A DNA stretch of 63,461 nucleotides, filler included, from Octopus bimaculoides (lineage: Eukaryota): NCBI RefSeq assembly GCF_001194135.2. It is 8 parts of 7 records of this genome, joined end to end, with 100 filler letters (N's around TTAATTAATTAA, not from the genome) between each part and the next. Parts side by side here need not be neighbours in the genome. Positions count along the whole stretch, not along the records: positions 62,164 to 63,461 come from NW_026387744.1; 7 more parts are not named here. One strand, given 5' to 3'. This document shows, piece after piece, positions 4,450-63,461 of the stretch; the first letter of the stretch is position 1, and every line of letters begins with the position of its first letter. A program made the translations under genes and the position numbers. Below the pieces are notes generated by a model. The model was not told the DNA's origin. It made no database searches and worked only from the letters and a program-made list of their open reading frames with translations.

Positions 4450-6910
4450 TGAAATGTAAGATAGGATACAGGAAAACTATGAATATTACTGAAGGAAAGA
4501 AGATTGAAGGGAAGCTGGCGTTGGTCTCACAATGAGAAACTGGAGAAAGACTCGACAGCAGTTAATGACAGGACCATGACAATGAGACTACCACTCCATA
4601 AAAAGGTCTATGTCATAACTGTCAATGTCTACACACCCACAATGAATAACCCTTGGGAAGTGAAAGAATTTTATGCTAAACTGAGAGAGATGATGTGCAA
4701 AGTTCCCCACAAAGACAAGCTGATAATCGCAGGAGATCTCAATGCAAGAGCAGGGGAAGATGCTGCCAGATGGCCTAGTGTGGTAGGCAAACATGGCATA
4801 GGCAAGTGCAATTCAAATGGTGAGCTTCTTTTAGCCCTCTGCTCTGATTTCAACCTGGTAGATACAAACACTGTCTTCAAACACATAAATCATCAAAAGG
4901 CCACTTGTATACACCCTGGCTCAAAGCACTGGCACTTGTTAAACTAAGTAGTTACCTGGAGATGAGATCAGAACAATGTCTTGGATACAAGAGCCATGAG
5001 ATGTGCAGGCTGCGCTACTGACCACCACATAATCAAATCAAAGGTTGCTTTTTCCTTCAGGAAGCAAAGCATGAAGACAACAGGCCAACCAAAAAATAAG
5101 CTAAACACCACAAAACTCAGAGATCCCAAAGTGAAACAGGAATTGCAGGAACACCTGGATATGGCATTGAGAGGATAAGGAAAACAAAGGACTTGATGGA
5201 AAATGGAACATATTGAAAATAACTACATATGAGACAGCTCAATGAGTCCTTGGCAAACTGTTGAAAAAACATTAAAATTGGTTCAACGAGAACAAAATCA
5301 AACTACAAACCCTGCTAGAGGAAAGGAACATCATAAAGGCAAGGCAGCTAAATTACAACACAAGATCAAACAGAGGAAAACTAGTAGCAGCAGAAGAAGT
5401 CACAACAGTATATTAGGAAACTGAAATCAGATTGATGGGAAGCCAAAGCTGAAGAGCTACAGCATTATGCAGACAAAAACAATATGAAAGCATTTTACTA
5501 AGAACGTCAAAAGGTATTGGTCCACAGAGAAGTACAACAAAACTCATAGCTCTTGCTGACAAAACAGTACTCCAGGAAAAATCAGAGATCCTTGATAGAT
5601 TTACCAATCACTTTGACAGCCTGCTTAATAGCCCAGGCATCGTGCACTATGCTGCCCTCAAAAATGTTTCACAACAGCCAACCATCAAATCCTTAGATTA
5701 CAAACATATTTACAAGGAATGCAATAATGCTATCAAACAAATGAAAGAAGGTAAAGCACCTGGCAGATGCAGCATACCTGCTGAAATCCGGAAACGTGGA
5801 GGTGTAAAGCTTACTGAAAGCCTGTATAACATTGTATTCTAGATCTGGGAGATGGAAATGGTTCCACAAGACTGGAGAGAGGCAGGTATCATTCCTATCT
5901 TCAAAAAAGGTTGAGAGGACTGTGGAAACTACAAGATCTTGACTAGTATTCTATTAAAGAGACTAAATTAGTATATCTGTCTAAACGTCTTAACTTGAGA
6001 CTCAATGTGGCTTCCATTGCAGTAGAAGCACTGTGGACATGACCTTCTGTCTTTGCCAACTTCAGGAAAATTGCATTGAGCAGTACATGCCTATGTATTC
6101 AGTGTTCATAGACTTCACAGTCTTTTGACACAGTATCCTGTGATGGACATTGGGTGGTGTTTAAGAAATAAGGCTGTCCTCAAAGGTTCATCAACTTGGT
6201 CAGGTCCCTCCATGAAGAAATGCAGGCATTTGTAGTACGAGATAGCAATACCTCAAATGAGATTGTGATGACAAATGGAGTTAAACAAGGGTGCGTACTT
6301 GCTCCCTCAATCTTGCAGAAGTGTTGGAAGTTGCCTTCAAGGAAGTTGGAGGTGGGATTTACATCCAGACATGGCATGATGCAGATCTGTTCGATGTTGC
6401 ACAATATAAAGCCAAGACACTCTACGAGGGCCTTAGTGTGAGAGATGCTGTTCACTATTGATAGTGCACTGGTTGCCCACAGCACTGAAGGTGTGCAGAA
6501 ACTGGTAGATAACTTTTTCAACTGCACAACAGTTCAGCTTAAAGATTAACATCAGAAAAACTGAATGCCTTTACCAACCTGTGGAAAACCTAAATGCCCC
6601 TGTAACAGAAGAAAACATAACAATTGGACATGAAAGGCTGGTTCTGTGCAAAGCATTCAAATACTTACGTAGCACCATTTCAAATAATGCACAACTTGAC
6701 CAGGAAATCACATACATAATAAGCAGTTAGTGCTTCTTTTGGCAGATTGGAAGAGAGACAGGGAAAATAGACACATTTCCTTATGTGTCAAAGTGCTTTC
6801 CTCCTTGCTGTATGGAGCTGAAACCTGAACAATCTCTAAATCTCAAGTAGACAAGTTACATGCATTGATAGCAATTTACATTGGTTGGGCCACATACACA
6901 GGATGGACAA
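4450..6910 (+). mobile_element. Decayed RTE (BovB-like) LINE: APE + RT
   Basis: ORF 4504-4947 (LIIAGDLNARAG, GKHGIGKCNSNGELLL, HPGSKHWHLL), DTRAMRCAGCATDH, KEGKAPG, NGVKQGCVLAPS; many stops and frameshifts. Confidence 0.9.
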
Positions 6911-7142
6911 CAGACTTCTCAGACAAACCCTTTACTCCTAATCATGCAAGGCGAAAAGAAATTATGGAAAACCTAGATTAGGATTCAAAGATATAGCAAA
7001 AAGGAACACGAAGTGAAAAGGAATTGATTATAATAAATGGCAAACCCAAGCAAAAAAAAAAAAAACAGCCAGTATGGAGAAAGTTTATCAAGTCATGCCA
7101 AAGCTATGAACATAGTCATGACAACTGACTGCAGATAATAAT

Positions 7143-7732
7143 ATTAAAGGTCTGTAGGTATGTGACACTTTGTTATGTAAATACAGTATATTATGAAGTA
7201 TACTAAATGTTTTTTATGTCAGTACCATGTCCTGCTGTGTCAGCAGTGCTTGTTACATTATTTTTAAGGTTGTTTCTACAGATATTCTATACAAACTATA
7301 TTCAGCACTGGTTTTTGCTTCAACATTTCGTATTGAGACATCAGATGTAAGTAAGCAATGAGATCGAGACAAAAGTTGGTAATGAGTGTATATGCCATAT
7401 TTCGGGGGGTTGTTGCCCCTTCATCGGCACTCATCTAACCCACTTCTATCTCCAAACACATTGCTTATACAGCCACTGCATACAGCAGTGTTACTAGATA
7501 TACCAATTTACATATTAGACACATTCCTGGAACTGGTATGTAAACGTTAAAGGCTTGTAAGTATGTTGCACTTCGTTATGCAATCACAATATACTATGAA
7601 GTAAACTAAATGTTTTTATAAGACAGTACCACTTCTTACTGCATCAGCAGTGCTTGTTACATTATTTTTAAGGTTGTTTCTACAGATATTCTATACAAAG
7701 TATAGCCAGCATTGATTTTTGCTACAAAGTTT
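7143..7732 (-). repeat. Two ~185-bp direct repeats (~7143-7325 and ~7547-7732), pLTR-like
   Basis: Shared core CAGCAGTGCTTGTTACATTATTTTT(T)AAGGTTGTTTCTACAGATATTCTATACAAA with diverged flanks; hammerhead motif between them and a Penelope-like ORF remnant adjacent. Confidence 0.75.
7382..7434 (-). ncRNA. Type I hammerhead ribozyme, core U4C variant
   Basis: Minus strand: ATGAGTG-CCGATGA-AGGGG-CAACAA-CCCCCC-GAAA-TATGGCATA-TA|CACTCAT; 7-bp stem I, near-palindromic stem III; CUGAUGA reads CCGAUGA. Confidence 0.65.
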
Positions 7733-7797
7733 CATATAATGTTAAATGTGCTTTATCTTTAGTCTGAATGTGTCAAAGATTTTCTGGCTAATAATTT

Positions 7798-8200
7798 TCA
7801 GATTGATTTTGATGAGTTTATTAGTTTAATGAATGGGTTGTTATTGAATTTGGGTTCATGGTCCTTGAAACAGATATATGGGCATTTGCATGTTGAGATA
7901 TCTTCTCTTTCTTCAATTTTTAGGACGTTGGTTATTTTCTGTTTTGTTTTGTCTATAGAGTTTATGTTGTTTAAAGGTGCCTTTAAACAACACAATGCCT
8001 TTATGTTATAGAGTGTGTTTGAAAGGGGATGGTTGTAAGAAGTTTTGACCTGGTAGAGATTGCTACTCATGTCTGATTTTAGTTTTGATGAAGTCAATTT
8101 TCTGCTTCATCTCTTTCTACAATGTGTTAGTTTACTTGTTGAATATTTATTCTCTTGATCATTGCAAATAATACATATTTGAAAGTTTGTAGTAATAGAT
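7798..8200 (-). mobile_element. Penelope-like element fragment (region upstream of RT)
   Basis: ORF 7798-8097 PYICFKDHEPKFNNNPFIKLINSSKS is homologous to INLKDHKKNFQENPTVRLICPTKS of the PLE at 15375. Confidence 0.65.
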
Positions 8201-8469
8201 TAGGTGATAGACATTTGACTGTCTTAAATGTATAGTTGTTCATGGAATTTTCATCTTCTTTGTCTTTTTTCTTATGATTAAATTTCCCATTTTAGTTGTT
8301 AGTTGAAACTTTTGGTTTTTTTGCAGTAATATTTCTAGGTAATGTTTCATGTTTGGTATTGTGTATACTTCATGGAGACATGTATAGAATATTGCCCTAT
8401 CTTTTCCTTTACTGTTTTCAGTTAATATTAGGAAAGCACTCATTCGCATTAGAACCGAGTCATATTAAT

Positions 8470-8900
8470 AGTAATGTTTATCACCACATCAATATGATTG
8501 TTCAATGTTACCACCATTCTTAACCCCAGTAAAATACTCCTTGAGCTGGTTATCAATGCAATCTACACTGGTATACATTGCTAGCAGACAACAAAATCAC
8601 CAGACCGAATGGTTTTGGGTTACCCATGCCCATTATCTGTGCTGAGCACCTGGCTGCCAGAGACAGCAGGAATTTACTCCAGCTCATAATATATACAAAA
8701 CCAAGTGACAATCAGTCACTGATCTTGCAAAAAGTAAAGTAGCTGGTCAGAAAATCTCTATAAGAGATGAAAGTAGTAACTATACTGAGAAGTAATGTTT
8801 ATCACCACATTAATATGGCTGTTTGATGTTTCCACTGTTTTTAATCCCAGGAAGAGCCTCCTCCAGCTGGCTATTGATACAATCTGCACCCGGTATATAT
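8470..8900. repeat. Two ~110-bp diverged direct repeats (~8470-8580, ~8791-8900)
   Basis: Both begin AGTAATGTTTATCACCACAT(C/T)AATATG and end ATCT(A/G)CAC(T/C)-GGTATA(C/T)ATTG. Confidence 0.7.
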
Positions 8901-9289
8901 TGTTTGTTTTTATGTTACGTTATATATAACAACAATTGAACATTAAACTTAAAGTTTACTCGATACTTTATATTACACTATGTATTTATTAACTTTTACA
9001 ATGAAAACTTTAATATTGACTTCAAAGTTTCAGTTTGCTTACCTTCATCAGACTGGTTTACTTGGTTTCTTTTTGGTTTTATACAATTTTTGTCAAGTTT
9101 TCTTTGAGTGGTGGGAGCTATGTGTATGATCATTAAGTGTGGTGCATATAGACTGTGGAAGTAGTTGTATAGGAAGAGAGATATAGAAGGAAATGTGTTT
9201 GTAGGGTGTGGATTTGTGAGGGAATTTATATAGAAACTTAGTTTATATTGTAATCTAGTGGTTACAAAATAATGTTTGTAGACAATTCA

Positions 9290-62055: not shown

Positions 62056-62230
62056 ATATATATNNNNNNNNNNNNNNNNNNNNNNNNNNNNNNNNNNNNN
62101 NNNNNNNTTAATTAATTAANNNNNNNNNNNNNNNNNNNNNNNNNNNNNNNNNNNNNNNNNNNNTGGAGAAAGAGGTGCCCCCTCTAGTTTATACGTTTCG
62201 GAAGCGCTTGTGCGTTTAGGAATTAAAGAA

Positions 62231-62300
62231 TATAACGTCATATATCACGTGATATACAGCATATAACCGGAAGTATACGAGCAGCAGCTCAGTTCCTGTT
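62231..62300 (+). promoter_or_regulatory. Putative Pol II promoter of the parvoviral VP cassette
   Basis: CRE half-site ACGTCA (62235-40), 16-bp palindrome TATATCACGTGATATA with E-box (62241-56), TATAA (62262-66), ETS ACCGGAAGT (62266-74), Inr TCAGTT (62289-94) with its A 29 nt from the TATA start; ATG at 62301. Confidence 0.6.
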
Positions 62301-63461
62301 ATGCAGCCGAGGAAGAAGGATCGGAACGCAGACAAAACAATAGAGTTTCACGTGCCGGGCTATAAATTCTTAGGACCTGGAACTGATCTGAAATACAGAC
62401 GACATCAGATCCCAGTAAACAAATTAGATGCCATAGCCAAAACACATGACCTCGCTTACGAAGATCCTAATAAGGACACCTGGGAATCAGACAAGAAATT
62501 CATCAGAAACGCAGTTAAACAAGGACCCACTGGCCTCCTCGCAGCTGGAGCTATATCTCTTAAACATTATAGCGGACTTGATAAAAAGTTCAGAAGCGCC
62601 AACGGTAATTCTAATAGCGTTACTCATAGCGATTACGATCTTAAAAATATGGCTGAAGCATCGACAAGCAACGAAGGCGAAACAGCTGCATCAGCAGGAT
62701 GGGCTGGAAGTAAACTGCAAACGGCATCGATCCCTGAATCCACTGGAAACTTCGGTGGAGAAGTCTGCTTCAAAAGAAGATTCCGACACGGAGTTAAAAC
62801 AACTCAAATGAACCAAGCTAAAGTAGATTTCACGAAATTCCAAGGCAACGAAGCGGGTTATCACAACGTGGGACACAGCTGCTACGGAGAAGTTACTTCA
62901 GAGGACTACATCATCCCTTACTGGTTGACATCATGGGTAAACCCGATACANNNNNNNNNNCCTTACTGGTTGACATCATGGGTAAACCCGATACAATTCG
63001 AACAAACTATAAAAACGGCAACATCTTACAGAATCAAATCCGTAGGTTTCGAAATATCAAACGTGATGGGTGGCGAATGGACATCTAGAAACAACGAAGA
63101 AGTATTCTTACCAAGCCCTTTACCCTATTTCGAAATATGGGTCGACAACGGCACATACGTCGGACACGGTAACTTAAAAACAATTACGAAAGTACCAAAC
63201 AACGGGTTCTCGTCAATACAACCAGAAACTTTCGCTACTATGGAATTACCCAAATACAAATTCGCATACTGCGCACCAACAGCATNNNNNNNNNNACTAT
63301 GGAATTACCCAAATACAAATTCGCATACTGCGCACCAACAGCATACGTAAATCAGCTTAGCGAGTGCGACCTTGACGCGGACACATTAACATGCACCTCC
63401 AAAATAGTGAGATTCCACGACTGGAGAGAAATGCCAAACGTGCAAAAAGTGAGACAAGGCG
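62301..63461 (+). CDS. VP1: Parvovirus/densovirus capsid protein VP1 with PLA2 domain (open at window edge after collapsing two overlap gaps)
   Basis: PGYKFLGPGT (Ca-binding loop), DAIAKTHDLAY (catalytic HD..Y), downstream D in ESDKKF; Gly/Ala/Ser-rich stretch after M117; jelly-roll-like FKRRFRH and IPYWLTSWVNPIQFEQTIKTATSYRIKSVGFEI. After collapsing the duplications it continues YVNQLSECDLDADTLTCTSKIVRFHDWREMPNVQKVRQG with no stop (at least 352 codons). Confidence 0.9.
62446..62811 (+). CDS. Overlapping +1-frame ORF (121 aa), putative viral membrane accessory protein
   Basis: Lies inside VP1u/VP2 N-terminus; hydrophobic run VILIALLIAITILKIWL followed by basic KHRQATKAK. Confidence 0.45.
   Translation: MTSLTKILIRTPGNQTRNSSETQLNKDPLASSQLELYLLNIIADLIKSSEAPTVILIALLIAITILKIWLKHRQATKAKQLHQQDGLEVNCKRHRSLNPLETSVEKSASKEDSDTELKQLK

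Follow-up and report, generated by a model that had tools for sequence, protein, structure and literature searches.

A conserved +1-frame open reading frame with a predicted membrane helix overlaps the VP1-unique region of a parvovirus-like capsid gene in Octopus bimaculoides

A capsid-like gene and the reading frame that overlaps it

The window analysed here is the whole of a 63,461-nucleotide stretch (filler included) from Octopus bimaculoides (GCF_001194135.2), and its last piece, positions 62164-63461 from NW_026387744.1, carries a parvovirus-like VP1 gene whose VP1-unique region (VP1u) is overlapped in the +1 frame by a second open reading frame (ORF) predicted to encode a small single-pass membrane protein. 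The VP1-like ORF starts at the ATG at 62301, has recognisable homologues, and runs along the plus strand to 63461, where it leaves the piece and is therefore partial. The piece totals about 1.3 kb, of which only 137 nucleotides (nt) lie upstream of VP, and it consists of three short contigs joined by two runs of ten Ns (62951-62960 and 63286-63295), which we read separately; the VP frame is open in each of the three. Both gaps have exactly duplicated flanks, of 35 nt and 49 nt respectively, which represent unmerged contig overlaps, so what looks like a shift of VP frame beyond the second gap stems from the assembly and is no true frameshift.

The core of VP1u (62343-62480, plus strand) is a PLA2-like domain with the Ca-loop YxGxG and the catalytic HD pair, matched by Pfam PF08398 over residues 15-60 at E = 4.6e-10, and the motifs HVPGYKFLGPG and HDLAY can be read directly in the sequence. 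The domain probably extends to about 62570, ending near VP codon 90, and the PF08398 match in P0010 spans profile positions 2-79. A VP1u profile built from three relatives also matches parvoviral VP1 chains in PDB, with E values down to 7.6e-5. Downstream of PLA2, the capsid part matched nothing in Pfam and no sequence in PDB; an AlphaFold2 model of it, built from a 19-sequence alignment, was too poor for a fold search, with a predicted local distance difference test score (pLDDT) of 34.5. The putative identity of the gene as a parvovirus-like VP1 thus rests on the PLA2 domain together with the layout of the locus. That layout includes a VP2-like start codon in the VP frame at 62649-62651 (plus strand), in the strong context aaaaatATGg; purine at -3 and G at +4 are always present at this codon, and the residues that it opens read 'MA[D/E]' in nearly all aligned relatives and 'MVD' in one.

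The overlapping ORF occupies 62446-62811 on the same strand, in the +1 frame relative to the VP-like ORF at ATG 62301, and encodes 121 amino acids followed by a TGA stop (62809-62811). The PLA2 catalytic dyad supplies its start codon, which is spelled across the His and Asp codons and precedes the VP2-like ATG (62649) by 203 nt; the frame continues beyond that ATG, just as an earlier note on this DNA had described: a 121-codon stop-free stretch running from the HD region past the VP2-like start. The +1 frame contains six stops over the 45 codons that lead up to the ORF, then runs through 124 codons with none and meets four in the 47 after that; the +2 frame contains 20. The same note had pointed to a hydrophobic helix followed by a basic cluster, and these are readily located. 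A predicted transmembrane (TM) helix of 20 residues, amino acids 51-70 (APTVILIALLIAITILKIWL, 62596-62655), has a Kyte-Doolittle 19-residue mean of 2.42 and is modelled as helical by AlphaFold2 with pLDDT up to 93; it is followed directly by the basic juxtamembrane cluster KHRQATKAK (amino acids 71-79, 62656-62682) and later by a second one, KRHR (62719-62730). The TM segment lies over the variable VP1u linker, VP codons 99-118, downstream of PLA2, and ends on and includes the VP2-like ATG.

Toward the N-terminus, AlphaFold2 predicts another helix at amino acids 28-48 (62527-62589), over the C-terminal half of PLA2. It includes the segment LELYLLNIIADLI (amino acids 34-46) that had been proposed as amphipathic; the segment is indeed present, but with a hydrophobic moment of at most 0.37 its amphipathic character is only moderately supported, and such conservation as this N-terminal part shows in relatives goes no further than the overlapping PLA2 codons impose. 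The full single-sequence model of the +1 protein has helices at 28-48 and 52-92, with a mean pLDDT of 62.6 and the highest values, up to 93, over the hydrophobic core. Searches with the protein or its profile found nothing in a set of 5.8 billion proteins, in Pfam, in PDB or by BFVD fold search. The sole match of an exhaustive HMMER search of 1.84 billion representatives was an ankyrin-repeat protein, which we set aside as spurious since its score came from summed repeats. At the level of sequence and predicted fold, the +1 protein thus appears to be an orphan with no detectable homologue.

Conservation of the +1 frame and a signature of selection on its hydrophobic segment

A protein search with VP1u yielded only two matches among the 5.8 billion proteins, and a search with a capsid profile yielded 18. 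One of the latter is a 'hypothetical protein' of Octopus vulgaris encoded on an 84-Mb chromosome record (OX597831.1; L004), which bears out the link to molluscs that had been proposed for this sequence; another lies on a 76-kb ENA contig and adjoins a reverse-transcriptase ORF. A scan of IMG/VR with the VP1u profile found no relatives. We compared the DNA of twelve matches and used ten further distinct relatives for the counts of the +1 ORF. The sequences fall into two clades: clade A comprises the window copy together with L001, L002, L004, L010 and L016, with 45-59% VP identity to the window, and clade B comprises L005, L006, L012, L015, L019 and the truncated L008, at about 33-39%.

The +1 frame is kept across both clades, as the coding reading of it had anticipated. 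ATG-initiated +1 ORFs of 58-121 amino acids that span the homologous hydrophobic segment occur in the window copy and in L001, L002, L016, L005, L006, L012, L015 and L019, so that eight of the ten further relatives keep an ATG and an uninterrupted frame to the end of the hydrophobic segment. In L004 it is open with no ATG, the PLA2 catalytic dyad also having been lost, and in L010 it is interrupted by one stop, that copy carrying in addition one frameshift that hits both frames. Clade A ORFs start at the same His-Asp ATG, and those of clade B about 17 codons downstream, at an ATG made from Asp-Glu codons, with the frame upstream closed by stops; in every copy, in-frame stops shut the +1 frame just upstream of the ORF. 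A membrane-type segment with a positive C-terminal flank is found in all ten tabulated ORFs, with Kyte-Doolittle 19-residue means of 1.5-2.7, a C-terminal flank of net charge +1 to +5 and an N-terminal flank of at most +1. Because this is a positive-inside pattern, the predicted arrangement is that of a single-pass protein with its N-terminus out and its C-terminus in.

Chance was gauged by shuffling the 216 VP codons of the window copy in three ways (synonymous, codon-order and uniform-synonymous) over 20,000 trials. An ATG-initiated ORF of at least 121 codons arose in the +1 frame in 0.4-0.6% of the 20,000 shuffles (P about 0.005), and a +1 hydrophobic window as strong as the observed one in 0 of 5,000. 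The rarity of both length and hydrophobicity among shuffled controls, which had been put forward as a check on the ORF, holds for every relative as well as for the window: when each of the ten sequences was compared with its own synonymous shuffles, the longest +1 open run gave P values from <0.0002 to 0.037, and the hydrophobic window gave values from 0/5,000 up to 0.07. In a replication test, the columns were fixed from the window alignment and synonymous codons were shuffled within each relative; +1 hydrophobicity at these columns was above the shuffles in five of five relatives, with P = 1.5e-4 to 2.9e-3.

The pattern of substitution over the membrane-segment columns is informative about the source of this hydrophobicity. 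It is here that pairwise amino-acid identity of VP is lowest (0.24), with that of the +1 product higher (0.35), and here also that identity at VP third bases peaks, at 0.62 vs 0.37-0.47 in four other segments; constraint on synonymous sites had been one of the expectations for a genuine overlapping gene. The third position of a VP codon is the second position of a +1 codon, where T is the base that makes the residue hydrophobic, and in each of the six sequences aligned, T fills it at 52-63% over the segment but at 19-23% elsewhere (Fisher P = 1e-4 to 5.5e-3; for the window copy, 63% vs 19%, P = 1e-4). The corresponding frequencies over the segment in L012 and L015 are 45% and 60%. Low VP identity combined with high third-base identity and T content over the same columns is a signature of selection on the overlapping frame, and the conservation of the hydrophobic segment, as read from these alignments, is not forced by VP. 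As a negative control, we examined 15 metagenome loci that share only the PLA2 core with the window, and in these the +1 frame closes soon after the HD motif.

A separate observation concerns the N-terminal part of the +1 product, which is predicted to be lumenal. It contains N-x-S/T sequons (NQT and NSS) at 62485-62505, amino acids 14-20, and sequons recur at the homologous columns of relatives, as NSS or NST in clade B; they are at least partly forced by conserved VP 'K/Q-F' codons.

Coding potential, rival explanations and likeness to known overlapping proteins

Taking the ORF, its conservation and the selection signature on its hydrophobic segment together, we think it quite probable, from comparison of sequences, that the +1 ORF codes for a single-pass membrane protein, or did so in ancestral viruses. 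The explanation that best covers the observations as a whole, and which we regard as probable, is that a genuine coding gene has been overprinted on VP1u in a parvovirus-like capsid gene, itself divergent and associated with cephalopods. The frame would have been coding at minimum in the viruses from which the present copies descend.

One challenge to a coding gene is that an open and hydrophobic +1 frame might follow simply from the composition and codon usage of a hydrophilic VP1u linker rich in Asn, Ser, Thr and Asp, whose T-ending codons read as Ile, Leu or Val in the +1 frame, and that it has been passively inherited with no protein made from it. Conserved VP residues demonstrably dictate several +1 features: the ATG (through His-Asp), the motif NII.DLI (through VP KHY.GLD, and kept only in the closer clade, where that VP motif is also kept), the Trp of K[IL]W (through the VP2 ATG and the G after it), DG.E (through VP NGW.G) and the terminal stop (through VP Met-Asn). 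The N- and C-terminal parts, moreover, carry no extra conservation. What this account leaves unexplained is why shuffles that keep both the VP protein and its own codon pool rarely match the open run or the hydrophobicity of any of the ten sequences, and why third bases stay T while the VP residues around them diverge; at 33-59% VP identity, unconstrained synonymous sites should be randomised. We therefore consider a passive by-product of VP coding to be improbable.

An even smaller likelihood attaches to the idea that the third positions serve a nucleic-acid signal, such as a splice acceptor tract, a VP2 translation enhancer or an internal promoter. T enrichment is strictly confined to every third base, with A/G-rich positions between, and so the stretch is not a pyrimidine tract; no stable RNA structure is predicted over the region (z = +0.89); and such an element would not account for some 100 stop-free codons, the positive C-terminal flank in 10 of 10 ORFs or the start codon in 9 of 10. 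The constrained stretch does stop exactly at the conserved VP2-like ATG, and parvoviruses often regulate VP2 by splicing or special initiation (such elements are discussed in PMC10891878), both of which speak in its favour. A related possibility is that the +1 segment is coding, but as a spliced exon or a frameshift product of VP1 and not as an ATG-initiated protein of 121 amino acids. The starts of the two clades lie about 17 codons apart, one copy has no ATG, constraint is seen in the hydrophobic part only, and many spliced small proteins are made by parvoviruses (PMC12298888), all of which would suit such a product. Set against this are the weak-context ATG that precedes the segment in nine of ten copies and the in-frame stops just upstream of it in all, and we give the alternative product only a slim chance.

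Several observations nevertheless weigh against the overprinted membrane-protein gene that we favour. It is the PLA2 domain, and no Pfam or PDB match in the capsid part, that supports the parvoviral nature of the host gene. All relatives are VP-only, most have a broken VP frame and at least one sits in a host chromosome, so the gene may be a fossil and the window copy may be unexpressed. Each clade has its own start codon for the ORF and one copy has none, the hydrophobic windows of three relatives are borderline (Kyte-Doolittle 1.5-1.6), and the C-terminal tail varies in length from 5 to about 50 residues. Constraint beyond staying open is confined to the hydrophobic segment, the N- and C-terminal parts showing none. 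Finally, the Fisher-combined P of the shuffle tests, about 1e-11 to 5e-12 and for the replication test about 5e-12, treats the sequences as independent, and their shared ancestry means that it overstates the evidence, yet at these distances synonymous sites are expected to be near saturation.

Signals around the VP start offer some guidance as to how an overlapping protein might be expressed. A putative VP promoter block (62235-62296, plus strand), read from sequence motifs and partly conserved upstream of VP in relatives, comprises a cyclic-AMP-response-element-like ACGTCA (62235-62240), a 16-nt palindrome with the E-box CACGTG (62241-62256), a TATA-like box (62262-62266) and a TCAGT initiator (62289-62293). 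The promoter-like block also holds GAGGTGCCCCCTCTAATT, and the relatives in which it is partly kept are L001, L002, L004, L006 and L010. The initiator CAGT lies 3-10 nt before the VP1 ATG, abutting it in L006, and because of this proximity the predicted leader is unusually short, about 10 nt in the window copy. The VP1 AUG has an intermediate context, that of the +1 ORF a weak one, as it is in all copies that have the codon, and the VP2-like AUG a strong one. Only two ATGs lie between the VP1 and VP2-like starts of the window copy, those of a mini-ORF and of the +1 ORF, both with a pyrimidine at -3. This order of contexts, with so few intervening AUGs, fits leaky scanning, which operates in densoviral capsid expression and in that of SAT, a small single-TM protein translated from capsid mRNA. 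There is also no in-frame Met between the VP1 and VP2-like starts (VP codons 2-116 of the window copy) in six of seven sequences, which is suggestive of scanning-dependent initiation of VP2. Counting against a scanning route, the depletion of out-of-frame ATGs between the two starts is not significant relative to synonymous shuffles (P = 0.13-0.94). The mini-ORF, ATG CCA TAG at 62428-62436, had been suggested to precede the +1 ORF in the same frame, and so it does in the window; as a conserved regulatory feature we rejected it, given that relatives carry other short +1 mini-ORFs or none.

If the gene is or was expressed, its product would be a protein of roughly 60-120 amino acids with a hydrophilic N-terminal part, one TM helix and a basic C-terminal tail, the N-terminus being predicted to lie outside or in the lumen and the C-terminus in the cytosol. 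The likeliest route to its synthesis would be leaky scanning on a capsid mRNA with a very short predicted leader, a mechanism that we put forward tentatively and hold to be somewhat less probable than its absence. By analogy with SAT, MAAP and the predicted proteins X and ARF1, the protein might work at the membranes of the host late in infection, for instance helping progeny to be released or to spread; a specific role in egress or lysis is suggested by that analogy, and we regard it as rather unlikely.

Comparison with known overlapping proteins brings out a likeness of design. The ORF described here has an AUG start and encodes a classical hydrophobic TM helix, in which it differs from MAAP, which uses a non-AUG start and lacks a central TM. 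Small membrane-protein ORFs in the +1 frame over VP1 have been described for erythro-, tetra-, dependo- and protoparvoviruses (PMC10891878). MAAP is read in the same +1 frame, overlapping VP1u and VP2, and is membrane-associated and expressed from capsid transcripts, but it is rich in Thr and Ser and disordered over PLA2 (PMC10891878). In architecture the ORF resembles X of erythroparvoviruses and ARF1 of tetraparvoviruses, both encoded over the PLA2 region in the +1 frame, with a central TM and a positively charged region after it (Karlin 2024, PMC10891878); they have an AUG start and no known monocistronic mRNA, and their support comes from ORF conservation and synonymous constraint and not from experiment (PMC10891878). 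The octopus ORF shares with them the +1 frame of VP1, a start within the PLA2-coding region and, by prediction, an outside N-terminus, a central TM and a positive cytosolic region. It differs from them in that their TM overlaps PLA2 itself and can be aligned between genera by way of the VP1 alignment, whereas the TM described here is encoded past PLA2, over the variable linker, with its end on the VP2-like start codon. Its host lineage differs too, being associated with invertebrates and known from endogenous-looking copies only. No named match that would indicate similarity to X or ARF1 was found in Pfam, PDB, BFVD, the 5.8 billion proteins or the 1.84 billion representatives. With SAT, which is located in the VP2 N-terminus (PMC10891878), the ORF has in common the +1 frame of the capsid gene, a small size with a single TM and a TM near the VP2 start. 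The start of SAT, however, comes shortly after the VP2 AUG and the whole of SAT overlaps the N-terminus of VP2, in contrast to the start inside PLA2 seen here, and the ORF is about twice as long as SAT, with no homology found between the two.

The view that this is a MAAP-, X- or SAT-like accessory protein, as the earlier note had it, is thus supported in the sense of analogy, with none of the refuting conditions set for it having held, and homology to MAAP, X or SAT was not found. Because it has no detectable homologue anywhere in the sets searched, the predicted protein is best filed as an analogue, and not a member, of the X, ARF1, SAT and MAAP families. A TM at the junction of VP1u and VP2 is a position that differs from those of X, ARF1, SAT and MAAP, and a limited literature search turned up no description of an ORF of this kind in parvovirus lineages associated with invertebrates. 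Overprinting of VP1u in the +1 frame by a single-pass membrane protein could on a bolder reading be a recurrent and perhaps ancient event that is not confined to a handful of vertebrate parvovirus genera but extends to protostome (cephalopod) lineages, through either an independent origin at the VP1u/VP2 junction or a deep shared origin with X and ARF1; alternatively, the intact window copy could be an expressed, host-retained element that still makes the protein. We regard these bolder readings as unlikely.

Few hidden overlapping genes are known in parvovirus capsid genes (SAT, MAAP, X and ARF1), most of them were found late, and their presence affects how capsid genes are recoded and interpreted. 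The ORF described here would add a case from an uncharacterised invertebrate-associated lineage, one with a clean comparative signal in that, along the membrane segment, conservation is higher in the overlapping frame than in the capsid frame. Its position is new, and this favours the view that small membrane proteins have repeatedly been born in the +1 frame of VP1u. The case also illustrates how accessory genes of never-isolated viruses can be detected through endogenous viral copies, and it draws attention to a multicopy, VP-only family of parvovirus-like elements in cephalopod genomes.

The element family and related loci

The VP frame is broken by stops, frameshifts or both in most copies, the VP region of L001, for example, being called as five separate ORFs; over the sequence at hand, none is as intact as the window copy. 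Neither an NS1-like ORF nor an NS1-like Pfam match was found within 6 kb on either side in L004 and L005, and no terminal inverted repeats were found in L001 or L012. Several copies that are 45-70% identical to one another share sequencing runs: L001, L002/L003, L010/L011 and L016-L018 in SRR11869384/91/94, and L006, L014, L015 and L019 in ERR12370324. This occurrence of multiple diverged copies per run points to a multicopy family within single genomes. Given the broken VP frames, the several copies per run and the lack of an NS1-like gene nearby, the family looks, from its sequences, like endogenous parvoviral elements that consist of VP alone and occur in many copies in cephalopods. Units of this kind might go back to an ancestor with a segmented genome or might have been amplified within a mobile element. 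François et al. 2016 report sequences related to parvoviruses from molluscs at large, and the literature that we searched held nothing specific on these sequencing runs, on parvoviral endogenous elements of cephalopods or on overlapping capsid ORFs of densoviruses.

Some features of individual copies bear on the extent of the element. Contigs of 2.75-2.99 kb are close to the size of the whole element, and in L004 (OX597831.1) a VP-only element of about 2.8 kb (5831-8648) lies between direct repeats of about 300 nt (5508-5830 and 8649-8942), which are 89% identical overall and 97-98% identical in gap-free blocks. LINE-like (long interspersed nuclear element-like) reverse-transcriptase fragments occur inside and beside this element, with no NS1 gene nearby. 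In L012, positions 1-161 hold four copies of an AT-rich repeat (AAGACATTT.AATTA...), in units 23-60 nt apart, directly upstream of the promoter region. Searching the DNA of the window piece against phage records gave no match, and a bacterial promoter and terminator scan of it was set aside as irrelevant.

The 15 metagenome loci that served as the negative control (L021-L035, for example Ga0126336 and OFEP01) were considered as family members and rejected, as they belong to another family, with nothing but the PLA2 core in common and a +1 frame closed by stops. Their PLA2 core is about 50% identical to that of the window, they carry an ORF of about 87 residues that closes with …KRMKL and a stop, and this PLA2-bearing unit occurs in many contigs. 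In marine invertebrate metagenomes they may stand for a further PLA2-bearing element, either endogenous or split by introns.

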